Shown: positions 1,336 to 31,932 of the stretch, piece after piece
Layout of the letters: the number at the start of each line of letters is the position of its first letter
Position numbering within the stretch: position 1 is the first letter of the stretch
Assembly: GCA_002269645.1 (NCBI GenBank)
Contig: NIVC01004262.1
Location: 1-52,717 of the forward strand
Reading direction: 5' to 3'
Length of the DNA stretch: 52,717 nt
From: Macrostomum lignano
Lineage: Eukaryota
Program-made: the position numbers and the translations under genes
The notes under the pieces: model-generated
Told to the model about the DNA's origin: nothing
The model's database searches: none
The model's input: only the letters and a program-made list of their open reading frames with translations

Positions 1336-1925
1336 AATAATCTACCTATATTAAGTTAATACTAATTGTTGGTTAACAAAGATAATAAAAGTCAATAGAC
1401 AAAATCAACATGACCTATAGCTATAACTATAGACCTTAAATTATATTTGCATCATTCTTAATATAGAATATGGCTAGACTGACCTGTTGGTTGCATAGTA
1501 CTTCTAGTACAAATACTACAAAGCCTTTGGGTAATTTCCTTACTGGAGATATTGCCTTTGATATATTTATGGCATTGCATTTATTCGTAGGCTTATCTCA
1601 CTTTGGTAGTGACTGCAATCTGTAATTATAACTTATAGCAGCTATGCTAGTTGTTTTCTATAGTACTATTGTTGGCAATTAAGCATTTGTATATTTTATT
1701 GAAAAATATCTCTCTACCCTTCTTGGCTTCTGCATTTTCCAGTTTTGCTTCTTTGCACTACTTTTTCTTTTCCTTTTCATTCTTTGTTTCTGTGCTTCCT
1801 TGTCTCTTTTGAGTTTTGTAATTTTGTAAACTATCCTTGGTCAGCCATGGTTCTGCCATAGTGTCATAGTCAGCCTTGAACCCATAGTTTCTATTTAGAT
1901 TGGTACTATTTTTAGTGTTATAATT

Positions 1926-4900
1926 ATGCGTGACTTGAATTTTCTGTGCGCTGCACGCGCCAGCAAGCACAAGGTGTCGGCGGCGTCGGTGGCAGCGCCT
2001 GCGCCATCTTCACCAATGTCGCGTTCTACAACAGCCACAACAGCGGACCTCTCTTTGTTGTCCAGCGGCTCGTCGCACATGCTGCGCGGCCTGTCAGCAT
2101 CGGCATCCACTCGCTGCCTGCTCCACCTGAGACTGACCGACGCCGCACTGCGCTCCCTGGTACAGTTGGCCGGCGATGCCAGCGTCAACTTTGTTGAATC
2201 GTCAACAAATGGCGTTGTAGGATTTCTCAGCCTGTCGGACGGTAGTCGGCTCAATTTGATGTCGAATGACCCGTCTGAGGATCATCGGCCAACAGATCTG
2301 GTGCGATTCTCCCATAAATCCCAATCGGCTACTCGGCTGGGCCGATTGCGGCGGAGACTGACGGTGGACGCTGCGGCTCAGCAGTTGTCTATGGCGGCGG
2401 CCTCCTCAGTCACCTCATCGGTGAGTGCTGGATAGCATCATCGGGCATGCCGAGTCCTACTTCCAGAACCTTGCAATGCTCAGCCAGAATCCCCGATCCT
2501 CATGATGCTCAGCCAGAATCCCAGATCCTCATGATGCTCAGCCAGAATCCCAGATCCTCATGATGCTCAGCCAGAATCCCAGATCCTCATGTTGCTCAGC
2601 CAGAATCCCAGATCCTCCTGATGCTCAGCCAGAATCCCAGATCCTCATGATGCTCAGCCAGAATCCCAGATCCTAATGATGCTCAGCCAGAATCCCAGAT
2701 CCTCATGATGCTCAGCCAGAATCCCAGACCCTCATATTGCTCAGCCAGAATCCCAGATCCTCCTGATGCTCAGCCAGAATCCCAGATCCTCATGGTGCTC
2801 AGCCAGAATCCCAGATCCTAATGATGCTCAGGCAGAATCCCAGATCCTCCTGATGCTCAGGCAGAATCCCAGATCCTCCTGATGCTCAGCCAGAATCCCA
2901 GATCCTCATGATTTTCAGCTAGAATCCCAGACCCTCTGCCCTCATGATTTTCAGCTAGAATCCCAGATCCTCATGATGCTCAGCCAGAATCCCAGATCCT
3001 CCTGATGCTCAGCCAGATTCCCAGATCCTCATGATGCTCAGCCAGAATCCCAGATCCTAATGATGCTCAGCCAGAATCCCAGATCCTCCTGATGCTCAGC
3101 CAGAATCCCAGATCCTCCTGATGCTCAGCCAGAATCCCAGATCCTAATGATGCTCAGCCAGAATCCCAGATCCTCATGATGCTCAGCCAGAATCCCCAGA
3201 TCCGCCATCAGGATCCCGTCGATGCTTATCTAGATAGAAAATTCCAAAATTAGATGACCCCGATTCCACAATCTCTCTCAGGCCCACTTGGCGACTGAGC
3301 CGACGCTGCGCGATCGCCTTCTGCACCTGCTGGCTGCCAGGCCGCTGACTCGGCCGGAGCTGCTGGCCCGACTTCGCGCCGACGGCTTCGCCCAGCCCGA
3401 TCCGGTGGCCGTGGCCAGCCTGCTAGCCCAGCTGGCTAAACTGCAGGGCGAAGGTCGCGGATACGGCCTACGACCATGCATGTACCGGGAGGTCCGGCCG
3501 GACAGCTGGCCGGGCTACTCGGACACCGAACGAGTGCTGGTTAAACGCCGAGCTGCAGAGGCCGCAGCCGCCGTCGCTGCTTCTACAACCGCATCTACGG
3601 GCAAAGAGAAATCAGGTTGGTAGCGCTGTGTCTTAATCCAGGATTCGAACCAAGGACTGAAAATGCGTTGTACTGACTTTTGACCTAAGTTTTTAGCCTC
3701 AGTACAGCTTCGGTACAGTTTGTGTCTTCTCTTTTATTCATTGCAGTTGCCGAGTGCTCAAATTTCGACCGGGCATCTTCATCCGGTGTCCGTAGCGGCA
3801 GCGGGGGCAGCAGCGGCAGTAGCAAAGCAAAACTCAATAATGTCAACAATAACAATAATAACAACAGTAAGAATAACAACGGCGAGGAATGCTGCCAAAT
3901 TGATATTGCCAATCTGGCCAACTGCGATCTAGTCGACCTAGCCATGGATATTGACGTCAGCGACGAGGACTTGGACGAAGATGACGACATTGAAGATCCG
4001 TTTAATGAGGACGAGTGCAGCGGCACCGACGTGCCGGACGACTCAACAGCCAGCGTCGACACCGGCGAGACCGGTCGATGGCATCAGAGGCGACGCCAAA
4101 GACGAGGACAATCGGCGAATGCCGCCAGGCTGAAGCCAATTCGCAGTGTAGCTCAGCGGACTGCTTATAAGGTCAGTCAACGACTGAGCTGCCCGATCCC
4201 ACCGTCAGGATCAAGACATCCCGGATCCCCATCATCGGGATCACAACATCCCGAATCCCCATCATCGGGATCACAACATCCCGGATCCCCATCATCGGGA
4301 TCACAGCATCATGGATACCCATCATCGGGATCACAGCATCATGGATACCCATCATCGGGATCACAGCATCCCGGATCCCCATCATTGGGATCACTGCATC
4401 CTGGATACCCATCATCGGGATCACAGCATCCGGATCCCCATCATTGGGATCACAGCATCCCGGATCCCCATCATTGGGATCACAGCATCCCGGATCCCTA
4501 TCATCGATTACAGCATCCCGGATCCCCATCATCGGGATCACAGCATCCCAGATCTCCATTATCAGAATCACAGCGTCCTAGATCCTCTTCATTAGAATCA
4601 CAGCAACCCAGATATTCATCATCAGAATCACAACATCCCAGATCTCCATCATCAGAATCACAGCATCCCAGACCTCCATCATCAGAATCACAGCATCCCA
4701 GACCTCCATCATCAGAATCACAGCATCACAAATTCCCATCATCAGAATCACAGCATCCCAGACCTCCATCATCAGAATCACAGCATCACAAATTCCCATC
4801 ATCAGAATCACAGCATCCCAGACCTCCATCAGAATCGCAGCATCCCAGATATGCATAATCAGAATCACAGCAACCCAGATCTCCATCATCAGAATCACAA

Positions 4901-5256
4901 CATCCCAGACCCCCATCATCAGAATCGCAGCATACCAGATCATGAAAAATCTTGGCCCGCAGTCGCTGTACGACCGTCACTATCCCGAATATCGCCGCCT
5001 GTGGGAGCGAGTTCGTTCAGTCTCGGACGAGGCCGCAGTCCTGGAGACTCGCCTGGCGGGCAGCCGGCCCGGCAGCCTAGCGCACTCTGAGGCCAGCGCA
5101 GCGATTGTCCGCCTGTACCAGCGCTATCGATACGATGCTGGATTCCGCGGCGACACCAGACGATGCGGCCGATTGCAACGACGATTGAAACGATTGCGAC
5201 AGATGATTGAAAATTTCGATGCCGCATCGGGCGAGGAATCTGCACGAGCCGAATGA
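1926..5256 (+). CDS. ELL: RNA polymerase II elongation factor ELL, 4 coding exons, 515 aa
   Basis: Exons 1926-2420, 3282-3615, 3747-4171, 4963-5256, all GT-AG with matching phases (0,1,0); 1548 nt total. Motifs: N-terminal LLHLRLTDAALRSL; central LRDRLLHLLAARPLTRPELLARLRADG and DSWPGYSDTER; C-terminal occludin/ELL-type QRTAYK|SLYDRHYPEYRRL...RCGRLQRRLKRLRQMIENFD. Confidence 0.9.
2476..3202. repeat. 29-bp minisatellite in ELL intron 1 (~25 copies)
   Basis: Unit tgatgctcagccagaatcccagatcctca. Confidence 0.95.
4200..4941. repeat. 30-bp minisatellite in ELL intron 3 (~25 copies, sequence drifts along array)
   Basis: Unit catcatcgggatcacagcatcccggatccc, grading to catcatcagaatcacagcatcccagacctc. 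Confidence 0.95.
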
Positions 5257-5334
5257 CCGTCAGAGTTTGTATATCATATTGTTTATGGCAGCCCATAGTT
5301 TGAGTGTCCCAGTTTGACTGCTGAGCATTTGACT

Positions 5335-5590
5335 GGTTAGGGGTTAAAGGGTTAGGGTTTTGGTTACTTTATGGGTTACAGTTAGGGTTACGGCTACGGT
5401 TTGGTTAGGGTTAAGGCTACGGTTTGGTTAGGGTTAAGGCTACGGTTTGGTTAGGGTTAAGGCTACGGTTTGGTTAGGGTTACGGCTACGGTTTGGTTAG
5501 GGTTACGGCTACGGTTTGGTTAGGGTTACGGCTACGGTTTGGTTAGGGTTACGGCTACGGTTTGGTTAGGGTTACGGCTACGGTTTGGTT
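5335..5590. repeat. Telomere-like 23-bp satellite containing TTAGGG
   Basis: Unit ggctacggtttggttagggtta(a/c), ~9 copies, preceded by degenerate GGTTAG hexamers. Confidence 0.9.
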
Positions 5591-8244
5591 CGTTCGGCAG
5601 TCAAATTTTGACCCATTGTTTACATTGTTTATACACAATCGACAGTTGTCGTTTGTGCTGCTGATTTTGTCGTTCAACTCAGGTTCTCCGCATTCTTTAG
5701 AGATGAAAACAGAATTTCTCAAATAGGTTTCCTGTGTTGCTTTGTTAACTCTCTTCATCTGTCTGGTAGGAAACTGGTTAAACAGTTACCGGTCTGATTT
5801 TTATATATTTATATTGTGTTTAAATTCTATCTCGAAAAAAACAACCGATGCTAATTAAGTCACTGGATGGGCATGGAGTTTTAAAAATAGCATTTGGAAT
5901 GAATTAGACATTTGATATACAGCATAGCTCTATGTCAAATTTTTATTTTAATTGCGGCGTAGCTTCCTACATGTAGTAAAGCAATCAGAGAACATCGAGC
6001 GCTCGATATTCTCCGAAAGCAATTCAAACCAACTGACGCACACCTACTTTCTACATTTCATTGTCAAATGCTATTTTTAGAAGTCCATGGCTAGCCCGTA
6101 AAATTTATTGAAAGCTGAATTAGGGTTTCGACCATAGACTGTCGTTTGGCAATAGGTTAATCTTAGCCACAAAGTGTGTCTATATATTGAGGTAAAGTTA
6201 TATTGAAACGATTTTGTCTATGGTGAAAACTCTGCTCTACTGGCAAAAAAATGCAAAATTACAGAAAATATGCATTGATGTTAAACGAATTTTCTCGCTG
6301 CAAACTTTGATATAAGTACAAGTTTGAATATTCAGGTTAAAAACTTTGCCAACAGTAAAACTCATCATCTCTGTTTGTGTACAAAGCTATTGTTTTTTTC
6401 ACAATTTTTATCGTCTATTTTCTCATTCATCTGTTAAGTAATCAAACTTGCATTACTAACATTATAAACACTTCATTAGCATATTGAAGCCTTCAAAATT
6501 TCATATTTTTGTTTTGTGTATCAAAGAGTTTGAGTTAGGTTTGGTTTATGGCTTAGGTTAGGGTTATGTTTTAGGTTAGAGTTAGGTTCGGCAGTGAGTA
6601 TGTGGCAGTCACAGTAGGTAAAAATGGCAATTTACTAATTATCCTATATATTGCATCAATTTATATTTGCAAGAATATATTTGTCGCATTTAAAATATTA
6701 TAGTGATTTCATAGCCTGCCAATTATTTTGCGCTTATTCATATTACATCATTAAGATATTATTATTATTATTCACTTATTAGTTAATGCAATCAAACCTG
6801 TTAATTAGCCAGAAGCGCTTTGAATTTGTGTGTGTGTGTGTGTGTGTACATACCTAGTTGGCAACTACATAAACGTATTATTTCTTGTTTTTGCACGTTA
6901 CTATAGTCTGCTTGCTTGTTTAAATGCAAAATCTATTTTTTTATCTTCATTGTTCCAACTTAAATTTGCCTTCTTGCTCATCGAACTTCATGAGTTGATC
7001 ATAAAGTGACGGTTTTGTTTATATCTTTTTTTCTATTTTCTACTCGCTAATTGGTTTGTTTATATATTTTTGTATTTTTCTCTGTTTTTTAACGGCAGCA
7101 GTCTTACCTTTGTTAATACTGTTCTGTAGCTGCTACCAGTACTAACTTTAGCCCATTGCTAATTTTTACATGCATATATTTTTGACCGATTGGTGGTTTA
7201 AATGAGTTTTGCATATTAGGCAGACTATTTTTTTCTGCCAACTTTTTGTTTTTGCACTTTTCTCACTGTAGAAAGATGTCAAATGCAAGATAAACTGAGC
7301 AGGTCAACAGGTTTTCTTTGGTCTTTGGTTTCTTAAAAAAATTATTCAATAATTCAGCTTGCTGTGTGCTTCTAAAACTGGGGGTTTGACTCGATTTCAA
7401 TTCAGGCATTGTTATTTGCGCACTTGTATTTTAGCCAGCTTATATCACAGATACTAGAATAACTAGATAAGCCACTCAGCACATTTGCGTTCAAGCTACT
7501 TTCAGTTCACAGGGTAAACAGAAGCATTTTAATGTATTTTTAAAGTCAAGGCTCATTTTTTGGCTCTTACCCCACTCCCCGCCCCAGCTTAAACCCAAGG
7601 ACGACTTGCTTAAACCCTCAAACCACGCTTTACCCCCCCCCCGCCTTGCCCTATTTTTATTGCCTTTCTCGGAATTCCAGCCTAAAGCTGCCATGTACAT
7701 TTCAGTGGACTGGCTAATGTACATTATGGCTGAACCAATTAGCAAGCTTTTTACGCCTGCAAGCTTGTAGGCTTCTAAACTTATCGAAGTCTTTTCACTT
7801 TTCATCGAAGTGTATTCTTCCTGGCTACTGAACTGAAAGTAGAAAGCTGTTTTGCTAAGCATATATGCCCGAGTGGCCTATCTATCTGTGGCTGATATAA
7901 AGTACTGAGATGGCTTAATATACTGCACTGAAACAGCTGCGCGTCTCTATGGTAACCGATGCCTTGCCTACAGTGTATCACATTGAATCCCTTTTCCCTC
8001 CACCACCGATACTAAATGCCTCATTGGACGGTTGCTCGCCTTGAGACTCAGTGCTTGTTTGCTTTAGCCGGATAACTCTAAATAAATGAGTGTAAAAAAT
8101 CATAATTATCTGCAGTTATTAGTAGCCAAGTACAGAATGTTAGGTATCGCTGTGTTCGTTTTCATTGGATTGGAGTTCAATGCATGCAGCTAGGCATAAG
8201 ATTAAATTCTTCCTTTTGTAGGATTCACTGTCACCCTTCTTAGA

Positions 8245-8802
8245 CCCTCAGTTGCTGGGCCAGCTTCTCAAATCCCCAGTTGCTGGGCCATCCACTCAGA
8301 TCCTCAGTTGCTGGGCCAGCTTCTCAGATCATCAGTTGTTAGGCCATCCTCTCAGATCCTCAGTTGTTAGGCCATCCTCTCAGATCCTCAGTTGCTGGGC
8401 CAGCTTCTCAGATCTTCAGTTGCTGGGCCAGCCTCCCAGAGTGTCAGTTGCTGAGCCAGCCTCCCAGATACTCAGTTGCTGGGCAAGCTTCTCAAATCTT
8501 TAGTTGCTGGGCCAGCTTCTCATATCTTCAGTTGCTGGGCTAGCCTCCCAGAGTGTCAGTTGCTAGGCCAGCCTCCCAGAGTGTCAGTTGCTAGGCCAGC
8601 CTCCCAGAGTGTCAGTTGCTAGGCCAGCCTCCCAGAGTGTCAGTTGCTAGGCCAGCCTCCCAGAGTGTCAGTTGCTAGGCCAGCCTCCCAGAGTGTCAGT
8701 TGCTAGGCCAGCCTCCCAGAGTGTCAGTTGCTTCAGATCCCAGCCTCCCAGAGTGTCAGTTGCTTCAGATCCCAGCCTCCCAGATCCTCAGTTGCTGGGC
8801 CA
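8245..8802. repeat. 28-bp minisatellite upstream of KAT5
   Basis: Unit cagatcctcagttgctgggccagcctcc, variant cagagtgtcagttgctaggccagcctcc. Confidence 0.95.
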
Positions 8803-8851
8803 CAGACGCTACCCTATTCTCTATAACCTACCCTATTCTCTATAGCGTTAG

Positions 8852-11374
<2,523 letters not shown>

Positions 11375-11479
11375 AGATGCAACTTAATGGCTTGTCTAAT
11401 TTTATAATATGCTAATTAGCCAGCGTGGATTGTTTCTGAACAAATATATCGCAGCTTGTCCTGCAATCTGGGTTTCTAG

Positions 11480-12350
11480 GTAGACCCAGAGATGTAGGGA
11501 GACAATTAGAGATAGACCCAGAGATGTAGGGAGACGATAGACCCAGAGATGTAGGGAGACAATTAGAGATAGACCCAGAGATGTAGGGAGACGATAGACC
11601 CAGAGATGTAGGGAGACAATTAGAGATAGACCCAGAGATCTAGGGAGACAATTAGAGATAGACCCAGAGATGTAGGGAGACAGTTAGAGATAGACCCAGA
11701 GATCTAGGGAGACAATTAGAGATAGACCCAGAGATCTAGGAAGACAATTAGAGATCGATCGAGAGATGTAGGGAGACAAATAGAGATCGACCGTGAGATG
11801 TAGGGAGACAGTTAGAGATAGACCTAGAGATGTAGGGAGACAATTAGAGATAGACCCAGAGATGTAGGGAGACAATTACAGATCGACCGAGAGATGTAGG
11901 GAGACAATTAGAGATAGACCCAGAGATGTAATGAGACAATTAGAGATAGACCCAGAGATGTAATGAGACAATTAGAGATAGACCCAGAGATGTAGGGAGA
12001 CAGTTAGAGATAGACCCAGAGATGTAGGGAGTCAGTTAGAGATAGACCCAGAGATGTAGGGAGACAATTAGAGATCGACCCAGAGATGTAGGGAGACAAT
12101 TAGAGATAGACCCAGAGATGTAGGGAGACAATTAGAGATCGACCCAGAGATGCAGGAGACAGTTAGAGATAGACCCAGAGATGTAGGGAGACAATTAGAG
12201 ATAGACCCAGAGATGTAGGGAGACAATTAGAGATAGACCCAGAGATGTAGGGAGACAATTAGAGATAGACCAGAGATGTAGGGAGACAATTAGAGATAGA
12301 CGAGATGTAGGGAGACAATTAGAGATAGACCAGAGATGTAGGGAGACAAT
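11480..12350. repeat. 32-bp purine-rich minisatellite 3' of KAT5
   Basis: Unit gacccagagatgtagggagacaattagagata, ~27 copies. Confidence 0.95.
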
Positions 12351-13305: not shown

Positions 13306-13645
13306 GTGGATTTCCGATAATTGCTGATAGGGATTGTAAGATTTTCAATAGGGATTTTTTTATTTCCGATTTTAAAACTTCTGCTTGTTCTGCGTGTGAT
13401 TTCTGGGTGTGAATATTGTGAATATATAAAGAAGACTATAGCTACTAATTTGGCAAAAACTATACTTATTGTAAAAGACCGATTCTAGTGCGTTTTTCGT
13501 ACAAGCAAACTTCATCTCTCTCTTACATGCATGAGCTTCACAGTAAGCTTCAGACCTGTTCTAATATCAACACGCAGTTCTTCTATTTATTGTTCGTCTC
13601 TATATTTAATTTATAAAGCAAAATAGCTGTTACAGAGGCTTCACT

Positions 13646-19100: not shown

Positions 19101-21044
19101 AGTATGACAGTTTGCAATTTTTATAACATTCAAGTTTTTCGCATTTTTATACTACTTACAGTAGTTTACTTTGTATCGTATTTGGAGATCTCTACATTAA
19201 AAACCAAACTTGAACCTATTAATTTTGATTTCTTAGAAACCAAGCTTGAACCTATTTATATTGTTTCTTAGAAACCAAACTTGAACCTATTAATTTTGAT
19301 TTCTTAGAAACCAAGCTTGAACCTATTAATTTTGATTTCTCAGAAACCAAACTTGAACCTATTAATTTTGATTTCTTAGAAACCAAACTTGAACCTATTA
19401 ATTTTGATTTCTTAGAAACCAAGCTTGAACCTATTAATTTTGATTTCTTAGAAACCAAACTTGAACCTATTAATTTTGATTTCTTAGAAACCAAGCTTGA
19501 ACCTATTAATTTTGATTTCTTAGAAACCAAACTTGAACCTATTAATTTTGATTTCTCAGAAACCAAACTTGAACCTATTAATTTTGATTTCTTAGAAACC
19601 AAGCTTGAACCTATTAATTTTGATTTCTTAGAAACCAAACTAGAACTTATTAATTTTGATTTCTTAGAAACCAAACTTGAACCTATTAATTTTGATTTCT
19701 TAGAAACCAAGCTTGAACCTATTCATTTTGATTTCTTAGAAACCAAGCTTGAACCTATTAATTTTGATTTCTTAGAAACTGGACTAGATTTATATAAGTA
19801 TTGATTTCTTGGAAACCCTGCTAGACTTGAGATTATATATTTGTTAGAAATCTCATACAACCGCCATTCGCAGGTTGCCGAGGAGATCCAGTGCCAGCAC
19901 TTTCTTGTCAGCAATCTGTCCCAATCGCTGCTCCGCTCGCCGTCGGATCTGTTAATAAAATTCTCCCAAACGATGCCCACCGCTCGTTCCTTTTTCCTAC
20001 CCGTCGACGAGAGCGAATCTCCGCTTGGCTACATGCTGGTCAGATTCAACAAGTCCGAAGACTGTCTGGCCTGTTATCGCCTGTTGCAGAAGCACTACTC
20101 TATGGAGATGACCTTTGTTAGCCTGCTGGAAGTCTGCCAACTGCCCGGGGGCTTTTTGGTAATCAAAAACTTTTTATAGAATCTGTTAGGGTTGGCCCGA
20201 TAAATTAAGCCAATATTGAGTCCGAGAAGATAATAAAACTACTAAAAGTAGCATAATTGCAAATGTACTGGCTCGTGCTTACAGAATCTGTGCAAGTCCT
20301 TATATTTAACTGAAAGACAACCTAAAGTTGTTTAATAGCACACGTTTGTATAGAATCTTTGGTACTGGCCTGCTGGGTAGATTAGTCAAGTAAATTAATA
20401 ATACTGTAGGATTTAAACTACTGACAGTAGCTTAATTGAACATTTAGTGGTTAATAATAGTTATTTATTAGAGGCAGGCAGTGGCTGTGTGCACCCTGGC
20501 GCACTTTAAGCGGAATTGTCGCACAACCGGCGAGAGGCATTGCTGCCCATTCCGTCGGCTCCAGTAGTGCACAGCGGCCCTAGCTTTATATTATCGTTAG
20601 GCATGTACTGTGCCTTGGGGGCTTGGCTCTCAAGCTGGGCGTTAATTGCAGGGTGACTGCACTTGGAATCGAGCCTGGGCCGCTGGGCTACGTTCCTCAT
20701 TAATAATAGTTAATTACCTTGATAGAGCTTTTAGTCTGAATGCCTAGGAGTATCTGTACAGTTGCTATGCCTCCGCTATTGCTGCTCCACAGGTGCCAGC
20801 CCACAACCTGCTGAACTGGTGCCGCCTGGAGAAGCCAGCAGCCTCGTCTGCCTCGCTGTCGCAGCCGCGTATTGTACTGGATGACCCCGTCCGTTCGCCC
20901 TACCTGTGCACCTGCCATCCAGCCGCTCAGACTGTGGCTCCGCCGCCTGAGAAGTTGCACATCTTGGCTAACGAATTGGAAAACGCGATGGGCAATCCTT
21001 CCGCTATTGTGGATTTCAAGTCTGTGCTGCTGCGGCTCTGCTAA
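16116..21044 (+). CDS. Uncharacterised protein with acidic 12-aa repeats and 2-3 degenerate RRM-like domains, 3 exons, ~676 aa
   Basis: Exons 16116-17609 (CAG|GTGGGT), 19874-20158 (TTG|GTAATC) and 20793-21044, all phase 0. RNP2-like YFIVCGLP, LFVSRFP and FLVSNLS; RNP1-like LGYMLVRF. Family not recognised. Confidence 0.6.
16374..16845 (+). repeat. Apparently coding 36-bp tandem repeat, 13 copies of KVPPSGDA(E/A)ETS
   Basis: Unit aaggttccgccttc(a/g)ggagatgcag(a/c)ggagacatca; unit length is a multiple of 3 and it lies inside the open ORF 16116-17768. Confidence 0.9.
17820..19780. repeat. 36-bp AT-rich intronic minisatellite interrupted by the solo LTR
   Basis: Unit gatttcttagaaaccaa(a/g)cttgaacctattaatttt; degenerate at the left end. 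Confidence 0.95.
18211..19196. mobile_element. Solo LTR (986 bp) inserted in an intronic minisatellite
   Basis: Starts TGAAGAG and ends CTCTACA (TG...CA, 6/7-bp inverted termini). Flanked by TTAG/TTAA (4-bp TSD, one mismatch); the array resumes in register (aaaccaaact). Minus-strand TATA-like ctataaatata near 18930. Confidence 0.75.
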
Positions 21045-21571
21045 GTTTATTTTGTTAATGAGTAATTTCTAACTCTTATTTTTATATGCTAAGAAGAGAC
21101 CTGAGCAATACATAAAAAATTAATTATTACGATTACAGACCACTTGTTTAACTCCCAATCCCAATACTATAGGCTACAGTCTACTGATTTGTACTTTTCA
21201 AATCTGAGCTCCCAATTCCAGTTATTTTTCATTAACAAATTAAAAAGTATATACCAAGTTGTATTGGAAAAAACTGGCAAAGTGCGTTATTGTTGCATTC
21301 TATACTTAAGGTTATTTGAACTCGTTTATTTGTCGCAGTCCAAATGTTGCACTTTCCTGTTTGTTGTCTGCCTGCTTGCTCGGTGAACATCATTTTTAAA
21401 TAAGCAAGCCGTGTACGGCCGCCTCCTTGAATTCTTTATTTTTATTATTTTCAGATTAGAGATTCCTACTGCTAGTAGCTGGTCAAGAATATTGTAGGCT
21501 AATAGATGCGCAAAAACTGTGGGTTTGATTCACAAGCTGGAATATTAGGCATTAAAGTGTGTGTATCGAAG

Positions 21572-22233
21572 CAGTGGCGGATCCAGAATTTTTCCTTGGG
21601 GTCCGCCGACCTCATTGACCCCTCTACCTCGGATCCACCAGATAGTTCAAGTTCCGAACTTGAGATACTTTTAAGCAATATAACTACAGAACAGAAGAGC
21701 AAACAATTTTTTCAGCTTCCCAGGGGGTCATAATCCCATTATTGTCTCGGGAGGAGGTCAGCCGACCCCCTTGACCCCCTGGATCCGCCAGATAGTTCAA
21801 GTTCCGAACTTGAGGTACTTTTAAGCAATATAACTGCAGAACAGAAGAGCAAACATTTTTTTCAGTTTCCTAGGGGGTCATAATCCCCTTATTGTTTCGG
21901 GAGGAGGTCAGCTGACCCCCTTGACCCCCTGGATCCGCCAGATAGTTCAAGTTCCGAACTTGAGGTACTTTCAAGCAATATAACTGCAGAACAGAAGAGC
22001 AAACAATTTTTCAGTTTCCCAAGAGGTCATAATCTCCTTATTGTGTTGGGAGGGGGTCAGCTGACCCCCTATATTCGCCAGATAGTTCATGTTCCAAGCT
22101 TGAGTTACTTAAAAGCAATATAACTACAGAAGAGCAAGTGTAATTTTTATCTGTTTACCAGCCGGTCATGACCCCCCCCCATAATTTTCTCGTGAGGGTC
22201 AGCTGACCCCCTTGACCCCCCCTAGATCCGCCA
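21572..22233. mobile_element. MITE-like element with CAGTGGCGGATCCAG / CTAGATCCGCCA termini and internal 150-bp tandem repeats
   Basis: Left terminus 21572-21586; right terminus 22222-22233 is its reverse complement with one mismatch. GGATCC(G/A)CCA recurs at 21631, 21781 and 21931, degenerate near 22075. No TSD resolvable. Confidence 0.65.
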
Positions 22234-22363
22234 AAAAGTTCTACAAATGTTCTCCGTGTACTCAAGTGTAAAGTCAGCCCCGCAAGTTAAGCAGAGTTGG
22301 CCGCGGTTAGTAAGCAGCTGAATTATAGGCTTTTGTTTGTCCCTTCCCTTAAAGGCATCCACA

Positions 22364-24772
22364 ATGAGTAATGCTGATTTGGGATTTTTCTACCAGCTAT
22401 AGCTAAACTATATCACTCCTCTGCAGTCTGCTATCACAGGCGACGACAGTAAAGTCCTAGCCAACGTGCTGGACATTCAACCGGAAGTGATACCGGATGC
22501 CGAGTTTGCTACCTACTTTGATCTGTCTGGTACAGTTGAATTCATTAGGAATTTGCTATTGGCTAAAGCGAAACCTCAGGCAGCTGAGAAACAACAGCCA
22601 CCTATTACTGTTGTTGTCGGTCTCCAGCTGCCATCGCCTCTGTTTCACTATGCCAAACAGCTTGTTAACGAATTAACTTGCCTACTCAAAGCCGCAGCTG
22701 ATGAAGACGAGCAGGTCAAGTTGGCTGGCTCTGTGCAGCTTCGCCTGCTGGCAGACACTGACAGCTGTTGCGTTGACTGCGTCACGGCTGCTCACTGCGG
22801 CTGCTCCGCCGTTATTCACTACGGCGACGCCTGTTTCAGCCGGTGTCCTCACCTGCCCGTGCACTACGTTCTCGGTTGCTATGGCAACCAGTCAGCTGCC
22901 GGCCGGGCTGTGTCTGAGAAACTAGCCGAGACTATTCTGTCTACAGTGCTTGCCGGGCCAGACTGCCCCGGTAAATTGTTGTTAGTAGCGCCGGGCGCTC
23001 TGCATGCCTCTGTGTTGCTAGCCGCGCGCGACTGTCTGGTTGCTAAGCAACCGTCTATCGATGTTTATTTAGCAACGCCGAATCCTCTAGCTGGCGAGGC
23101 CGATCGAATCGAAGGCGCCGCTCGGTTTCTATGCGGTCGCTGGGTGCCGGAGCCGTTTTTTAACAACAGCGATGAAAATCCAACTAGTCGAGTTGTAGTT
23201 CACTTTACCACGGACGCCGACTCGTTGCTAGGGCTAGCCGTGGCTTTAGCGTTCCTAGATATCGGGCCAGTGTACCAGTGCGTGTGCCAGCCTGGCGACT
23301 CGGCAATAAAACTCGATCGAATCGACACCGACCGCCGGTTTAAACGCCGAATGCTTCTGAGCAGCAAAGCCGCCGAGGCCAGGCGAATTGGCCTGCTAGT
23401 CTGCGGCTGCGTGGACTCGCTGACGCCCACCCTGGACTACGCGCTTGGCCTGGTCCGCTCGGCCGGCCGCGTGCCCTACATTGTTAGCGTTGGCCGGATC
23501 AACCCGGCCAAGCTGGCCAACTATGCTGATATCGATGCATTTGCTCTGATTGGTTGTTACCTGCGAGCCCTGCTGGACTCCAGAGATTATTTCCAGCCAC
23601 TGCTGTCTATGGTTGAACTTGAGCGTGCTCTCAATCCCAATCGGCAATTTGCCTACGCTTATAGCGTCGACTTCTCCGACTGTCTGCCCGGCGGCCGGGA
23701 CTTTGTTGAGCCGCCGTCTCCGGCTGCGGGACCTGCCGGAGATGGAGACGGAGAGAGCGGGGCCGTAGGGCAGGTGAGGGTTGCGGTGTGGGCGTGCTTG
23801 TTGTGTTTCAGACGCCATAAACCTTCCAGATCCTCAGTTGCTAGGCCACCCTCCTAGATCCTCAGTTGCTGGGCCAGCTTCCCAGATCCTCAGTTGCTGG
23901 GCCAGCCTCCCAGATCCTCAGTTGCTGGGCCACCTTCCCAGATCCTCAGTTGCTGGGCCAGCCTCCCAGATCTTCAGTTGCTGGGCCAGCCTCCAAGATC
24001 CTCTGTTTCTGGGCCACCTTCCCAGATCTTCAGTTGCTGGGCGAGCCTCCAAGATCCTTAGTTGCTGGGCCAGCCTCCCAGAGTGTCAGTTGCTTGGCCA
24101 GCCTCCCAGATCCTCAGTTGCTCGGCGAGCCTCCCAGATCCTCAGTTGCTGGGCCACCTTCCCAGATCTTCAGTTGCTGGGCCACCTTCCCAGATCCTCA
24201 GTTGCTGGGCCAGCCTCCCAGATCCTCAGTTGCTGGGCCAGCCTCCCAGATCCTCAGTTGCTGGGCCAGCCTCCCAGATCCTCAGTTGCTGGGCCACCTT
24301 CCCAGATCCTCAGTTGCTGAGCCACCTTTCCAGATCTTCAGTTGCTGGGCCACCTGCCCAGATCCTCAGTTGCTGGGCCAGCCTCCCAGATCTTCAGTTG
24401 CTGGGCCAGCCTCCCAGATCCTCAGTTGCTGGGCCACCCCAGATCTCCAGTTTCTGGGCCAGCCTCCCAGATCCTCAGTTGCTGGGCCAGCCTCCCAAAT
24501 TCCCAGTCGCTTGGCCGGGGCCATCCTCTCAGATCCCCAATATCCCAAGACGTGCCCAGCACACGCAGAATCTCCAAACGCCCCATTTGCAGCAGCTGGT
24601 GCTGCGCAACGGCAATCTGCAGGTGGCGCTGCCGGCTGGCAACTTCCTGTCCGGCCGGAGCTGGCGCGGCCTGGACCCGCAGCTCGGCGCCACCCCGGTA
24701 GCCCAGCTAGAGAAAGGTCGCAGCGGCCTGGCCATCAGATACGACTCGGAGGATGCTGATAACGCGAAATAA
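22364..24772 (+). CDS. DPH2: Diphthamide biosynthesis protein 2, 3 exons, ~505 aa
   Basis: Main exon 22440-23773 (CAG|GTGAGG) and last exon 24593-24772. Motifs GLQLP, SCCVD...VIHYGDACFS, VGRINPAKLANY..IDAF and DPH2-specific FLSGRSWRGLDPQLG...GRSGLAIRY. The 4-nt first exon 22364-22367 is inferred. Confidence 0.9.
23822..24510. repeat. 28-bp minisatellite in DPH2 intron 2 (same family as 8245-8802)
   Basis: Unit cagatcctcagttgctgggccagcctcc, variant ...gggccaccttcc. Confidence 0.95.
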
Positions 24773-25125
24773 TCAGTCACCAATGTCTACGGCGATATGT
24801 ATAGAAAGTTACTGTTTAACCAACTGTGCTTGACCATTTCTCTCTAGCATTTTCTATGCAATCTTCCGATCGCTGATATTTCATCGCTGTGATTTGGTAA
24901 ACTGTTAGTCAGGTGCAAATGAAGCAAATTATTTTCAGTTTTGTGTGTGCTCTATTTTAAAATATGAAAATACACAAGCCTACTTTTTGATCTTGTTGAG
25001 GAGAAATATTCTGATATTCCTGATTGTCTTGGATTTCCTATAATTTCCATTGTAATTTTCGTATTGAAATTAAGACTGCATATCTTTCAATTCGCTAGTA
25101 TCAATTATGTTTTGTAGCCTAAAAA

Positions 25126-25270
25126 ATTCGAACTCGGGAACTTTTCATTACAGAGAAAATAGGCTCTTGATTATGTGATCAAGTGTGGGATTCGAACTCG
25201 GGACCTTCTCATTACAGAGAAAATAGGCTCCTAAATATGTAATCAAGTATGGGATTCGAACTCGGGACTT
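25126..25270 (-). mobile_element. Tandemly duplicated tRNA-derived (SINE-like) fragment
   Basis: Three copies of (gg)attcgaactcggga at ~64-bp spacing; the reverse complement tcccgagttcgaatccc is a Pol III B-box/T-arm. No full cloverleaf. Confidence 0.4.
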
Positions 25271-25409
25271 TGTTAAAATTCGAGTTCGATTCAGAAATTT
25301 TTCATATAAGTAGCCAGAATAGCGTTTTTTACTATTATTTTTTTGTGCTATCTAATTTGGAAAAAAAACATTTACCATTGATTTGCATGCCGTCTCCGTA
25401 ATCAACATA

Positions 25410-25796
25410 ATGCACATAAAATTAGCGATAGCATCGTTTCGACCGATATGTTGTCATGGCAACAGTCGGCTAATTTTTCTATCGCTGAATCGCCGCCTAG
25501 CCTCGGGCTTAGAGAATCGCCAGGCCAATCCGCAGGAGGCCGCCCTGCAGCAGCGCCAGCAGCAGCGGCCGTTGGCGCCGCCGCCGCCGAGGCCGAAGCT
25601 GCGCTATCAAGACTTCTACGATTTCGATCGGCACTCGATGGATCGAATATCGAAGCTGACTTACTTTACCCTGGCCCTGCTGCTCATCCTTGGGTTCACT
25701 GGCATTCCGGACACGCTGGTGACTACATTGGATCGCTATGTGCAGGGCGACAAGGGCCAAACAGGCTTAATTAATAGTAGAAGGCCGGAAGCTTGA
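25410..25796 (+). CDS. Small orphan protein (~128 aa) with one hydrophobic helix; possibly mitochondrial
   Basis: GC-rich ORF in AT-rich flanks. N-terminus is Arg/Ser/Leu-rich and acid-free (MHIKLAIASFRPICCHGNSRLIFLSLNRRLAS); TM-like LTYFTLALLLILGFTGI. The start codon is uncertain. Confidence 0.6.
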   Translation: MHIKLAIASFRPICCHGNSRLIFLSLNRRLASGLENRQANPQEAALQQRQQQRPLAPPPPRPKLRYQDFYDFDRHSMDRISKLTYFTLALLLILGFTGIPDTLVTTLDRYVQGDKGQTGLINSRRPEA

Positions 25797-25987
25797 CTGT
25801 TGTGACTCTTTTTTAGTCTTTGTGCATGCGTTGCCTTTGTGCGAGATTTCTATTGTATTATTTATTAATATTGTTGCCTGTATCCTGACGCTAGATCGAT
25901 TGTGCTTGGGTGGCCCACAGCAATTTATAATTACATAAAACAGTAATTTGAAAATCTATATTTATCCCTTTCTTGTTTATGGATAAC

Positions 25988-26052
25988 TAGATAGATAGAT
26001 AGAGAGATAGATAGATAGATAGATGGATAGACAGATAGATAGACAGACAGAC

Positions 26053-26091
<39 letters not shown>

Positions 26092-26103
26092 CAGGCAGAT
26101 AGG

Positions 26104-26145
<42 letters not shown>

Positions 26146-26280
26146 TATACATACTCGTATATAGATAGATAGATGGACAGATAAATAGATAGACAGATAG
26201 ATAGACAGATAGATAGGTAGATAGATAGATAGATAGATAGATAGGCAGATAGATAGATAGACAGGTAGATAGAAAGATAA

Positions 26281-26313
<33 letters not shown>

Positions 26314-26345
26314 CAGATAGATAGATAGATAGATAGACAGATAGG

Positions 26346-26376
<31 letters not shown>

Positions 26377-26412
26377 GCAGATAGATAGATAGACAGGTAG
26401 ATAGAAAGATAA

Positions 26413-26449
<37 letters not shown>

Positions 26450-26474
26450 CAGATAGATAGATAGATAGATAGAC

Positions 26475-26519
<45 letters not shown>

Positions 26520-26531
26520 GATAGATAGATG

Positions 26532-26574
<43 letters not shown>

Positions 26575-26575
26575 G

Positions 26576-26670
<95 letters not shown>

Positions 26671-26671
26671 G

Positions 26672-26708
<37 letters not shown>

Positions 26709-26774
26709 GTAGGTAGGTAGATAGATAGATAGATAGATACAGATAGATAGATAGATAGGTAGATAGAAAGATAA

Positions 26775-26811
<37 letters not shown>

Positions 26812-26832
26812 CAGATAGATAGATAGATAGAC

Positions 26833-26893
<61 letters not shown>

Positions 26894-26905
26894 GATAGAT
26901 AGATG

Positions 26906-26940
<35 letters not shown>

Positions 26941-27078
26941 GGATAGATAGATAGATAGATAGATAGATAGACAGATAGATAGATAGATAGATAGATAGAT
27001 GGATGGATAGATAGATAGATAGATAGATAGATAGGTAGGTAGGTAGGTAGATAGATAGATAGATAGATAGATAGATAC

Positions 27079-27158
<80 letters not shown>

Positions 27159-27242
27159 GGATAGATAGATAGATAGATAGATAGGTAGGTAGGTAGGTAG
27201 GTAGGTAGATAGATAGATAGATAGATAGATAGACAGATAGAC

Positions 27243-27290
<48 letters not shown>

Positions 27291-27374
27291 GGATAGATAG
27301 ATGGATAGATAGATAGATAGATAGACAGATAGACAGATAGATAGATAGACAGATAGACAGATAGACAGATAGAC

Positions 27375-27419
<45 letters not shown>

Positions 27420-27420
27420 C
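25988..27420. repeat. ~1.4-kb (GATA)n microsatellite with GACA/GGTA/GATG variants
   Basis: Direct reading. Confidence 0.98.
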
Positions 27421-27533
27421 ACAGACAAATACGATGGAAAATTGAGGATATTTTTTTCGTGCATGAGCCAAAAGCCGAATTCGCACAGCCTGCAGCAGTG
27501 AAGTGCCAGATTGATAGCAGAGTACAACTGTAA

Positions 27534-30500
27534 ATGTCTGACAAAGGCAAGTCTTCAAGCGGCCGGGGCGGCACTGTGAATTCAGACGATCAAAATGGCG
27601 GCGTTGTCGGATCGAAGGCGCCGCCGCCACCGCAGCCTCAGCAAGCGGAACCGGGTCCGCCGCCGACAAAGGACCCTAACGGAGGTGGCAGTGGTGGCGG
27701 TGGAGGAAGCGGCGGCGGCGGAGCCCCAAAGCCAGCCGCACCGCAGGGTCGAAAGCCGCCCGAACTGCCGCAGGTGGAGCGCAGCAACTGGCTAATCCAT
27801 ATGCACTATGTTCGGGGCGAATTCGATGCCTGCATGCGCCTCATCAAAGAGCAGCTGGTTGATAGCGGCAATCTGTGCGAGTATGCCCTGTAAGTGCGCT
27901 GCTGCCCCGATCTTTGAGTCTCTCAAATCCCCCCATGAAAATCAAGCCTCCCAAATCTCCCCATGAAGACAGCCTCTCAAATTTTCCCAAGGATAAGCTC
28001 CCAAATCTCCCCATGAAGACCAAGCCTCCCAAATCTCCTCATGAAGACCAAGCCTCTCAAATCTCCGCAAGAAGACCAAGCCTCCCAAATCTCCCCATGA
28101 AGACCAAGCCTCCCAAATCTCCCCATGAAGACAGCCTCTCAAATTTTCCCAAGGATAAGCTCCCAAATCTCCCCATGAAGACCAAGCCTCCCAAATCTCC
28201 CCATGACGACCAAGCCTCCCAAATCTCCTCATGAAGACCAAGCCTCTCAAATCTCCGCATGAAAACCAAGCCTCCCAAATCTCCTCATGAAGACCAAGCC
28301 TCCCAAATCTCCTCATGAAGACCAAGCCTCAAATCTCCCCATGAAGACCAAGCCTCTCAAATCTCCTCATGAAGACCAAGCCTCTCAAATCTCCTCATGA
28401 AGACCAAGCCTCTCAAATCTCCTCATGAAGACCAAACCTCTCAAATCTCCGCATGAAGATCAAGCGTCTCAAATCTCCTCATGAAGACCAAGCCTCCCAA
28501 ATCTCCTCATGAAGACCAAGCCTCTCAAATCCCGATCCCCATGATATTAAATAAAGACACTCATGTTCGCCCCAATGTTTCCATGTGCAGCTACGTTCAA
28601 GGCCTGATCTTACGCCAGCGCGGCCGCATCCAGGAGAGCATGGACGCGTTTCAACAATGCGCCCTGCTCAACCCTTCCTCCGTTAACAACCTGAAACAGG
28701 TGGCTCGGTCGCTCTTCCTGCTGGGCAGGCATCGCGCTGCTGCTGGCGTGTTCCAGGTAAGCTCCGGATTCGAATCGCTGCTGCATCTTCTTACTTATGA
28801 GTCATTAACAGTTAACAAATTTTAACCTCAGAGTCTTTATGTACATTCAGAGCTGACAAAAGCCTCAGTCTACCCGCTGTCTCTCCTGCCCCCCCCCCTC
28901 GTTAGGACGCCGCCAAGCAGGCGCCAGACGACTGGGAGATCGCGCACAACCTTGGCGTCTGCTGCATGCACATGCGCGATTTTGCCCAGGCCAAGGACCA
29001 TCTGCGTCGGGCAGCCGGACTGCGGCCTCACGAGAGCACCCTGGTGCAGCTGGGCAAAATACACATCATTGAGAACGACCTGCAGCACGCACTGGAGGTT
29101 TTCCGTCGGTCAGTCTCAATAATCTCTTTTCAAGAGAAACGCCCTAATATCCTCTTTATCTGATCTAATCTAGCCTAGAGAATCTGTCCGAATCTAGCCT
29201 AGAGAATCTGTCCGAATCTACCCTAAAGAATCTGTCCGAATCTAGCCTAGAGAATCTGTCCGAATCTACCCTAAAGAATCTGTCCGAATCTAGCCTAGAG
29301 AATCTGTCCGAATCTACCCTAAAGAATCTGTCCGAATCTAGCCTAGAGAATCTGTCCGAATCTAGCCTAGAGAATCTGTCCGAATCTACCCTAAAGAATC
29401 TGTCCGAATCTAGCCTAGAGAATCTGTCCGAATCTACCCTAGAGAATCTGTCCGAATCCACCCTAGAAAATCTGTCCGAATCTACCCTAGAGAATCTGTC
29501 CGAATCCACCCTAGAAAATCTGTCCGAATCTAGCCTAGAGAATCTGTCCGAATCTACCCTAAAGAATCTGTCCGAATCTACCCTAAAGAATCTGTCCGAA
29601 TCTACCCTAAAGAATCTGTCCGAATCTAGCCTAGAGAATCTGTCCGAATCTACCCTAGAAAATCTGTCCGAATCTACCCTAGAGAATCTGTCCGAATCCA
29701 CCCTAGAGAATCTGTCCGAATCTAGCCTAGAGAATCTGTCCGAATCCACCCTAGAGAATCTGTCCGAATCCACCCTAGAGAATCTGTCCGAATCTAGCCT
29801 AGAGAATCTGTCTGAATCTACCCTAGGGAATCTGTCCGAATCCAGCCTAGAGAATCTGTCCGAATGTACACCAGAGAGTACGAGCGTATGTCCGAATCTA
29901 CCCTAGAGAATCGGACCTAATCTACTCTAGAGAATCGGACCTAATCTACCCTAGCAAATCGCCCCTACTCCAACAATAAACACACATTCTCACTCCTACC
30001 TGCAGAGCCGTGGAGCTGGCCCCGGAGAACCCGGACCTGCTATCAACCCTAGGCCTGCTCTATATGCAGTGCAACCAGTATCAGAAAGCCTTCGAGCACC
30101 TGGGCAACGCACTAACCTACGATCCCGAGCACACCAAAGCTATCTTAGCCGCCGGCTCGATTATGCAGGCTCACGGAGACTATGATGTAGCTTTGACTAA
30201 GTACCGGGTGAGCTTGTGCCACTGAGCTTTGAGGGTTTTATAGCTGGATATTGATGATCAGTCCGCTTTGACACCAGTCTGGTAGCGTTGTTTCCGTGAC
30301 TTTCCGGCTGTTCTGCAGGTCTCCTATCTTCTCCATCTCGTCTCTTTACTGTACTATCCTCTCCTCTCCTCTCCCCTCTCTCCTCTCCTCTCTCCTCTCT
30401 CATCTCCCTCCCATATCCTCTCGACTCTTTTCTCTATTCTCTCCTTTCTCCTCTCCCCTCTCTTCTCCCCTCTCCTCTCCCTTGTCTTCTCTCCTCTCCT

Positions 30501-31932
30501 CTCCCCTCTCCTCTTTATCTACCGTAATTCAGCCAATTCACTGCAGGTGGCCGCCGGCAACGCGCCGGAGAGCGCCGCCGTCTGGAACAACGTCGGCATG
30601 GCCTTCTTCGGCAAGCGCAAATTCGTGGCCGCCATCACCTGCCTGAAACGGGCCGCCTATCTGAGCCCGTTCGAATGGAAGGTGCAGTACAATTTGGGCC
30701 TGGTGCACCTGTACACTGAGCAGTATGCCAGCGCTTTTCACTTCCTCACTGCCGCTATTCAACTGCGGCCAAAGATGCCCGCCCTCTACATGCTGCTCGG
30801 CGTGGCTCTCAGCAACCTGGATGATGCCGAGAATTGCCGCCTCGCCTATGATGAAGCTCTTAAAGTGGAGAAGGAGACTGGAAGCAGGTTTGTATATATT
30901 GTATATCCCCACTGTGTCCTTCCCCTTCCCCGCTGTGTCCTTCCCCTTCCCCGCTGTGTCCTCCCCCATCCCCGCTGTGTCCTTCCCCATCCCCACTGTG
31001 TCCTTCCCCATCCCCACTGTGTCCTTCCCCATCCCCGCTGTGTCCTCCCCCATCCCCGCTGTGTCCTTCCCCATCCCCACTGTGTCTTCCCCCATCCCCG
31101 CTGTGTCCTTCCCCATCCCCGCTGTGTCCTTCCCCATCACCACTGTGTCCTTCCCCTTCCCCACTGTGTCCTTCCCCTTCCCCGCTGTGTTCTTCCCCTT
31201 CCCCGCTGTGTCCTTCCCATCCTCAATGTCCTTCCCCTTCCCCACTGTGTTCTTCCCCTTCCCCGCTGTGTCCTTCCCCTTCCCCACTGTGTCCTCCCCC
31301 ATCCACACTGTCCTTCCCCATCCCCACTGTGTCCTTCCCCATCTCACTGTGTCCTTCCCCATCCCCACTGTCCTTCCCCATCCCCACTGTGTCATCCCCC
31401 ATCCCCACTGTGTCCTTCCATACCCGCTGTTGTCAAATATCCCCAACAACTAAAGATCCTCTCTTCCCAACTCCCCACACCTGCAAGATCCCTGGACCCG
31501 CTGGTGGCCCTGAACTACGCCGTCTACCTGTACAACTCTGGCGACGCCTCGGCCAGCGGCCGGATGCTCGGCGAGTTCGAGCGCCGCCTCCAGGAGCGCC
31601 ACGGCAACGCTGCGGCCGCCGCTGCCGAAGCTCCTGACGCTGTTGAGACCGGCAAACGTCTGGCTGCTCTGCTTAACGTCGGCGAGTCGCTGCTCTGGCG
31701 AACTGAGGCCCCGGCCGCCGCCGCCGCCGCCGCCGCCGGTCCCGCCGACTCTGCCGCGCCCGCGGTCCATCGGGCGCCCGCTGGCAGGGATCAGCCGAAA
31801 CGATTCGCCGGCGCTGGTGGTGCGGACGAGCTGCGCGACATTCAACGGGCGCCGCTGCCGCCGACAGAGCCGCCGAGCCACCCGAAGCCGGACCCGACTA
31901 GGCGGCCCATCAACCCTCAGCCGGACTTCTGA
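27534..31932 (+). CDS. BBS4: Bardet-Biedl syndrome 4 protein (BBSome TPR subunit), 6 exons, 570 aa
   Basis: Exons 27534-27889, 28591-28756, 28906-29108, 30006-30207, 30547-30887, 31488-31932 (phases 2,0,2,0,2; 1713 nt). Matches BBS4: [87 protein letters not shown]. Confidence 0.95.
27925..28530. repeat. 28-bp minisatellite in BBS4 intron 1
   Basis: Unit ccaagcctcccaaatctcctcatgaaga. Confidence 0.95.
29168..29950. repeat. 24-bp minisatellite in BBS4 intron 3
   Basis: Unit gaatctgtccgaatctagcctaga / gaatctgtccgaatctaccctaaa. Confidence 0.95.
30350..30515. repeat. CT-rich low-complexity tract in BBS4 intron 4
   Basis: (ctctc/ctcct)n. Confidence 0.85.
30906..31420. repeat. 21-bp C-rich minisatellite in BBS4 intron 5
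   Basis: Unit cccc(a/g)ctgtgtccttcccc(a/t)t. Confidence 0.95.

Follow-up and report, generated by a model that had tools for sequence, protein, structure and literature searches.

We analysed a stretch of 52,717 bp from the flatworm Macrostomum lignano, called the window below, which an exact look-up with the PRELID3 protein identified as the entire contig NIVC01004262.1 of the Mlig_3_7 assembly (GCA_002269645.1). Seven genes lie in a row on its + strand, in the order ELL, KAT5/Tip60, PRELID3, a gene for an RRM-domain protein, DPH2, an orphan gene of 128 amino acids (aa) and BBS4. In this study, we found that predicted spliced leader (SL) trans-splicing of six of these genes, perhaps of all seven, is well supported by a comparison of four copies of the locus. 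Co-transcription also appears, on balance, to hold for at least parts of the cluster. The original prediction, made from the window sequence, had named the same seven co-oriented genes, and Pfam, UniRef and structure or protein matches confirmed that they exist in that order. Its range for the gaps from stop to start, 0.6-3.6 kb, was the same in our measurement.

Copies of the locus in the assembly

The gene series recurs in identical order on three further Mlig_3_7 contigs. NIVC01004608.1 (L002) is about 98% identical to the window, including the spacers. Positions 1-13674 of the window are almost identical to the end of the 312.8-kb contig NIVC01000983.1 (compared over its positions 291101-312800, L010): the 9,292 aligned bases of unique sequence contain 10 differences, of which 2 are substitutions and 8 are gaps of one base. 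The start of the window and the end of this contig may be one locus that was assembled twice. NIVC01000001.1 carries a more distant copy of 88-94% identity, which we term the homeolog.

Mapping of the predicted trans-splice junctions

The SL of M. lignano has 35 nucleotides (nt), CGGTCTCTTACTGCGAAGACTCAATTTATTGCATG, and is added to about 30% of the genes; the top trans-acceptor motif is [T/C]TNCAG (PMC5730564, PMC8629364). We mapped the junctions by comparing the four copies of the locus in the one assembly, together with the starts of the deposited coding sequences (CDSs). The sites are listed below; a slash marks the junction here and in the sequences that follow, and 5'UTR stands for 5' untranslated region.

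1944-1946, + strand: ELL trans-splice acceptor position, CTG in the window; exon starts at 1947 (junction 1946/1947)
8866-8869, + strand: KAT5 junction, CATG in the window; exon starts at 8870 (8869/8870)
13528-13533, + strand: PRELID3 junction, TGCATG after a pyrimidine tract; exon starts at 13534 (13533/13534); 5'UTR of 112 nt
15876-15881, + strand: possible trans-acceptor of the RRM gene, TTTCAG, weak; exon would start at 15882 (15881/15882)
22421-22426, + strand: DPH2 trans-acceptor, CTGCAG, intact and fitting [T/C]TNCAG; exon starts at 22427 (22426/22427)
25383-25389, + strand: orphan junction, TTGCATG, the last 7 SL bases; exon starts at 25390 (25389/25390)
27460-27465, + strand: BBS4 junction, TGCATG after a T-rich tract; exon starts at 27466 (27465/27466); 5'UTR of 68 nt

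The ELL junction reads aattttCTG/TGCGCT in the window and in NIVC01000983.1, and aatttCATG/TGCGCT in the homeolog. The deposited ELL CDS of the window is 5'-partial and begins with CAARASK, that is, with the TGC at 1947. At KAT5, the window, NIVC01004608.1 and NIVC01000983.1 have aaattCATG/GCT, and the homeolog has aaatttCAG/GCT. The ATG at 8867-8869 of the window occupies the exact place of the SL AUG, where the homeolog has CAG (about 4749-4751 in locus copy L007); homeolog KAT5 has no genomic ATG, and an in-frame TAG lies seven codons upstream of its CAG. On all copies, the KAT5 CDSs are annotated as partial and begin 1-2 codons past 8870, leaving out the ATG at 8867. Since the homeolog reads CAG without an ATG and the deposited CDSs start later, this ATG is probably not genomic.

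The PRELID3 junction is cttacaTGCATG/AGC (acaTGCATG/AGC) in the window, NIVC01004608.1 and the homeolog, and cttacaTTCATG/AGC (acaTTCATG/AGC) in NIVC01000983.1. This G/T difference at 13529 (position -5) is one of the only two substitutions between the window and NIVC01000983.1. The orphan junction is gatTTGCATG/CCGTCTCC in the window and gattTTACAG/CCGTCTCC in the homeolog. The BBS4 junction is tttttttcgTGCATG/AGCC (cgTGCATG/AGCC) in the window and tttttttcgTTCATG/AGCC (cgTTCATG/AGCC) in the homeolog. At DPH2, the reading frame opens right after ctCTGCAG/TCT and has no genomic ATG. The deposited homeolog DPH2 CDS is annotated as partial and begins with SAITG, directly after the same CAG. The RRM gene has aatTTCAG/CTAACTG in the window and in NIVC01004608.1, and aatTTCTG/CTAACTG in the homeolog, which differs only at position -2, where it carries the SL base. 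These results support the predicted junctions of ELL, KAT5, PRELID3, DPH2, the orphan and BBS4 well, and point weakly to the junction of the RRM gene.

SL-like bases at the junctions

At five junctions (ELL, KAT5, PRELID3, orphan and BBS4), differences between the copies are confined to the final 2-5 bases ahead of the exon. The variant bases always match the 3' end of the SL (..TTGCATG), and the alternative is either a consensus acceptor or a shorter SL tract. The changes are nested: they affect position -2 only, -2 to -4, or -2 to -5, and never reach deeper into the SL. In an unbiased scan for clusters of at least 3 substitutions, KAT5 and the orphan were among about nine clusters in unique sequence. 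The AG of the cis-intron acceptors in our gene models was kept in 12 of 12 cases. The motif [T/C]TNCAG is intact in at least one copy at KAT5 (TTTCAG), the orphan (TTACAG), DPH2 (CTGCAG) and the RRM gene (TTTCAG). At ELL, PRELID3 and BBS4, the acceptor is overwritten in every copy, and a pyrimidine tract precedes the junction.

The M. lignano genome paper reports that Mlig_3_7 was polished by Pilon with Illumina DNA reads and STAR-mapped RNA-seq. The SL-like bases are most likely SL-bearing RNA-seq reads that were written into the consensus during polishing. RNA-seq reads beginning a few bases inside the SL would have spanned the junction in the alignment and prevailed over the DNA reads, so that the end of the SL replaced the acceptor. 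If the polishing did write SL bases at these places, the overwrites are read-level traces of trans-splicing at the exact sites. The same local pattern, with SL bases abutting the exon, would be left if these bases were real DNA that arose by conversion with reverse-transcribed SL-bearing mRNA. Such conversion would imply identical junctions but suits short, graded tracts poorly: the tracts have at most 5 nt though the SL has 35, and their nested lengths are those expected of reads overhanging a junction. Moreover, near-identical contigs differ at the SL-like bases, the RNA-seq polishing speaks against conversion, and the "ATG" that the SL bases create before the orphan is out of frame and useless. 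We consider real SL-derived DNA extremely improbable. If it were true, SL-bearing mRNAs would be recurrently reverse-transcribed and recombined into their own genes in a flatworm, acceptors would have been destroyed, and at KAT5 an SL-donated AUG would have become a genomic start codon.

The original prediction had placed acceptors at AG dinucleotides just before the presumed ATGs, at 1915 (ELL), 8845 (KAT5), 13635 (PRELID3) and 22354 (DPH2). These AGs are present, and the pattern is that of chance. An AG lies within 25 nt upstream of 82% of the 1234 ATGs in the window, and its presence at six of the seven genes gives P=0.62. Because of this base rate, an AG near an ATG carries no signal. Only the TTACAG of PRELID3 (13635) fits the published motif; it is kept in all copies. 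Minor alternative use of the listed AGs is possible. The junctions mapped here sit 31, 24 and 72 nt downstream of the AGs named for ELL, KAT5 and DPH2, respectively, and 102 nt upstream of the one named for PRELID3, and the SL-like overwrites fall at positions other than these AGs. The deposited ELL and KAT5 CDSs do not include the ATGs that would come after the listed AGs. The ATG after 22354, taken as the DPH2 start (22364), opens a dead ORF (open reading frame) of 12 codons that is closed by a TAG at 22400, and no in-frame splice to the DPH2 ORF is possible. That the listed AGs are the true SL acceptors, or cis-acceptors of 5'UTR introns, is therefore very unlikely. SL trans-splicing as such gained specific, indirect evidence at six of the seven genes, at acceptors other than those named.

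These results suggest that Mlig_3_7 carries SL bases over trans-splice acceptors, by which false ATGs are made and real AGs are removed. The acceptor motif is present at only 44% of the annotated M. lignano trans-splice sites, and SL overwriting could be one reason for this figure. Comparing the copies within an assembly exposes trans-splice sites without any reads.

Predicted donation of start codons by the SL

Start codons supplied by the SL have precedent in flatworms (Cheng et al. 2006, cited in PMC9851317). At ELL, KAT5 and DPH2, the SL AUG would join in frame and give open products of 509, 546 and 509 aa; in all three, the stretch from the junction to the conserved domains has no genomic ATG. 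Trans-splicing at the DPH2 acceptor would give M-S-A-I-T-G in frame. The SL is thereby predicted to supply the start codon of ELL, KAT5 and DPH2. Ahead of the genomic ATG of PRELID3, the orphan and BBS4, the SL AUG opens short upstream ORFs of 31, 4 and 12 codons, respectively. With three of the seven proteins predicted to depend on the SL for their start codon, gene prediction based on genomic ATGs errs here. The ELL and DPH2 starts of the original prediction and the KAT5 "ATG" of the window are wrong starts of this kind.

Spacers and probable co-transcription within the cluster

About 15% of M. lignano genes are assigned to operons, of which 75% contain two genes and 93% two or three, with a maximum of nine; repeats inflate the operon spacers, and the threshold is 1 kb after removal of tandem and interspersed repeats (PMC8629364). 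One criterion for an operon in this species is a series of same-strand neighbours with no opposite-strand gene between them, and the cluster has this arrangement. The deposited annotation calls zero opposite-strand genes between 1 and 35.8 kb, where all calls are on the + strand, and the next called gene downstream of the cluster is on the minus strand at 43289-44047. In two other copies, the 10 kb upstream of ELL contain no gene calls. Spacer size was taken as the distance between a stop codon and the SL junction that follows it, with tandem repeats subtracted; the 3' untranslated region (3'UTR) is still included in these values.

5257-8869, + strand: ELL-to-KAT5 spacer, 3613 nt, of which 2791 nt non-tandem-repeat
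11375-13533, + strand: KAT5-to-PRELID3 spacer, 2159 nt; 975 nt minus tandem repeats
14363-15881, + strand: PRELID3-to-RRM spacer, 1519 nt; no tandem repeat
21045-22426, + strand: RRM-to-DPH2 spacer, 1382 nt; 771 nt minus tandem repeats
24773-25389, + strand: DPH2-to-orphan spacer, 617 nt; 474 nt minus tandem repeats
25797-27465, + strand: orphan-to-BBS4 spacer, 1669 nt, of which 1432 nt are (TAGA)n at 25988-27419; 237 nt left

Four of the six repeat-adjusted spacers are below 1 kb (975, 771, 474 and 237 nt). The description of the spacers as largely repeat held for three of the six, with tandem repeats making up 55%, 44% and 86%, and failed for the others (23%, 0% and 23%). A self-comparison of the window for interspersed repeats returned only a shared 28-bp minisatellite. 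AATAAA and ATTAAA counts in the spacers match the base composition; they neither place the 3' ends nor indicate a depletion. In the comparison with the homeolog, exons were mostly 97-100% identical (RRM exon 1, 95.3%) and spacers 93-96%, and the conservation profile of the window against the homeolog contained no clear promoter-like islands. NIVC01004608.1 is uninformative on conservation, as its spacers are as alike (98%) as the rest.

The deposited gene names provide a further line of evidence. According to the M. lignano genome paper, "transcriptional units", often multi-gene, were assembled and then cut at SL and poly(A) signals. On NIVC01004608.1, ELL is Mlig033023g1 and KAT5 is Mlig033023g3; on NIVC01000001.1, KAT5 is Mlig001257g2 and PRELID3 is Mlig001257g3. 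As the prefixes belong to assembled transcription units, unrelated genes under one prefix, here ELL with KAT5 and KAT5 with PRELID3, were presumably cut from one transcript. In M. lignano operons, the downstream gene of each pair is trans-spliced; KAT5, PRELID3, DPH2, the orphan and BBS4 have good indirect evidence of this, and the RRM gene weak evidence. These results suggest that at least parts of the cluster are probably co-transcribed.

Several points weigh against co-transcription. About 60% of the trans-spliced M. lignano genes lie outside operons (PMC8629364). The meaning given above to a shared prefix comes from methods text. A separate prefix, Mlig021243, is given to ELL in three of the four copies; that of DPH2 is different again, Mlig029196. 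An exact-protein look-up of PRELID3 and the orphan returned genome contigs only and no transcript contigs, and the cluster genes are absent from the supplementary tables of the eLife 2016 and Sci Rep 2018 papers. As evidence of trans-splicing, the SL-like bases are indirect, and for the RRM gene they amount to one A-to-T difference. Finally, with masking of tandem repeats alone, the ELL-KAT5 and PRELID3-RRM spacers exceed the 1-kb threshold (2791 and 1519 nt) and leave room for promoters; the excess may be interspersed repeats or long 3'UTRs.

The cluster could instead consist of seven separate genes that each have a promoter in the upstream spacer and are trans-spliced individually as single-gene outrons, so that their co-orientation would be mere neighbourhood. 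The frequency of trans-splicing outside operons is in line with this, as are the 2.8 kb and 1.5 kb of AT-rich, non-tandem-repeat sequence in the ELL-KAT5 and PRELID3-RRM spacers and the prefixes of ELL, KAT5 and DPH2, which differ in most copies. However, two copies have prefixes shared by ELL with KAT5 and by KAT5 with PRELID3, the last three spacers leave just 237-771 nt for both a 3'UTR and a promoter, and seven genes in a row on one strand would occur by chance about 1 time in 64 if orientation were random. We regard seven independent genes as a serious though less likely alternative. At the other extreme, all seven genes could form one operon of about 30 kb with a single promoter upstream of ELL, as the original prediction had allowed. 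All seven genes point the same way with no other gene between them, signs of trans-splicing are present at six or more, a gene-free stretch of at least 10 kb lies upstream of ELL, M. lignano is reported to have operons of as many as nine genes with spacers inflated by repeats, and KAT5 of the window is "g9" of its prefix, which implies a many-gene prefix. Against this, two spacers remain above the published threshold under tandem-repeat masking alone, keeping 1.5-2.8 kb of non-tandem-repeat sequence, 93% of the reported operons have two or three genes, no copy is known to have a prefix that spans more than two cluster genes, and ELL has its own unit name in most copies. A single seven-gene unit is possible but unlikely, and the part of the proposal that stands is that a polycistronic arrangement of at least a portion of it would agree with the criteria published for M. 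lignano and with the transcription-unit names.

Under partial co-transcription, the cluster would be transcribed as a few polycistronic precursors, at least KAT5-PRELID3 and DPH2-orphan-BBS4, probably with the RRM gene; a promoter upstream of ELL might even serve all seven. Formation of 3' ends together with SL trans-splicing would split the precursors into single-gene mRNAs, and each cluster mRNA would receive the 35-nt SL. Minisatellites would have stretched the spacers.

Gene models and neighbouring sequences

The gene models built in this study are as follows.

1947-5256, + strand: ELL gene; exons 1947-2420, 3282-3615, 3747-4171 and 4963-5256; 509 aa from the SL AUG; Pfam ELL and Occludin_ELL; deposited proteins
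8870-11374, + strand: KAT5/Tip60 gene; exons 8870-9886 and 10754-11374; GC-AG intron; 546 aa
13646-14362, + strand: PRELID3 (slowmo-like) CDS; single exon, 238 aa; PRELI domain; top matches slowmo/PRELID3A/B
16116-21044, + strand: RRM-domain protein gene; exons 16116-17609, 19874-20158 and 20793-21044; 676 aa
22427-24772, + strand: DPH2 gene; exons 22427-23773 and 24593-24772; 509 aa including the SL AUG; Pfam Diphthamide_syn
25410-25796, + strand: CDS of the 128-aa orphan; in the deposited annotation of the window contig
27534-31932, + strand: BBS4 CDS; six exons, 27534-27889, 28591-28756, 28906-29108, 30006-30207, 30547-30887 and 31488-31932; 570 aa; E=9e-163 to human BBS4

KAT5 contains Tudor-knot, zf-MYST and MOZ_SAS domains, and its top match among solved structures was human HTATIP/Tip60 (E=1e-136). 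Its sole intron (9887-10753) has a GC donor (AAG/GCAAGT ... CCCAG) and is 89% minisatellite. The RRM gene was named from UniRef, and our Pfam search of it gave no match. Its exon 1 contains a coding 36-bp tandem repeat (16363-16846) of about 13 copies with a 12-aa unit like ETSKVPPSGDAE. The copy number of this repeat varies among the locus copies, with full-length models of 676 aa in the window and 724 aa in the homeolog. The deposited RRM proteins, of 592 aa (window) and 688 aa, appear to omit some repeat units, and the deposited RRM and BBS4 models collapse repeat units or depart from the models built here.

DPH2 is intact in the window yet absent from the deposited calls there, and is called as partial on NIVC01000001.1. 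A search for homologues of the orphan protein among 1.8 billion representatives returned none, with low-complexity matches only. The 5'UTR and CDS of the orphan are 98.5% identical to the homeolog, and the flanks about 94%. The homeolog contig has no gene call for the orphan, whose protein has a C-terminal hydrophobic stretch, LTYFTLALLLILGF.

Nearly all introns and spacers of the cluster contain some array, with units of 4-150 bp. A 28-29-bp minisatellite family (..CAGTTGCTGGGCCAGCCTCCCAGATCCT..) occurs in ELL intron 1 (2476-3203), the spacer before KAT5 (8248-8802) and the DPH2 intron (23822-24516). A 150-bp tandem repeat with G/C-rich blocks (GGTCAGCTGACCCCCTTGACCCCC) lies at 21631-22241, and similar C-rich or G-rich blocks at about 1150-1320, upstream of ELL, and about 7540-7660, in the ELL-KAT5 spacer, may belong to a dispersed element. 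In the homeolog, the PRELID3-RRM spacer is interrupted at window position 14690 by an insertion of 1.7 kb (11049-12730 in L007), which may be a mobile element.

Rfam and tRNA scans of the window found no RNA genes, including no SL RNA gene. Downstream of the cluster, the minus-strand gene at 43289-44047 encodes 252 aa with no Pfam family; it is identical on three contigs and adjoins ZFYVE21 on the other two. At 47391-47885 (+ strand) there is an EF-hand ORF, 164 aa long, for which no gene call is deposited.

Comparison with known systems

The polycistronic precursors of Caenorhabditis elegans operons are separated into mRNAs by 3'-end formation, to which SL trans-splicing is coupled. The cluster likewise consists of unrelated housekeeping genes, and its precursors would be cut in the same way. 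C. elegans has spacers of about 100 nt and a dedicated SL2, whereas the M. lignano cluster has one SL and 0.6-3.6 kb from stop to junction.

SL-donated starts have been described in flatworms with an SL that ends in AUG, as here, and the predicted in-frame join to a start-less ORF for ELL, KAT5 and DPH2 resembles them (PMC9851317). The SL AUG is in frame for three of the seven genes by sequence prediction, compared with the 28% that this source reports for Schistosoma mansoni.

The closest system is that of the M. lignano operons (Wudarski et al. 2017, PMC5730564; Ustyantsev & Berezikov 2021, PMC8629364), from the same species and with the same 35-nt SL. The cluster resembles them in its co-oriented conserved housekeeping genes, probably trans-spliced downstream genes and repeat-inflated spacers; it differs in that seven genes would fall in the extreme tail of operon sizes, and in that its co-transcription is judged here from sequence. 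The overwriting of acceptors by SL bases is a by-product of this study that is useful to users of the Mlig_3_7 assembly. The arrangement itself belongs to a kind already described genome-wide for M. lignano, and the cluster is an ordinary case of it, with conserved genes that are probably trans-spliced, operon-like units and repeat-filled spacers.

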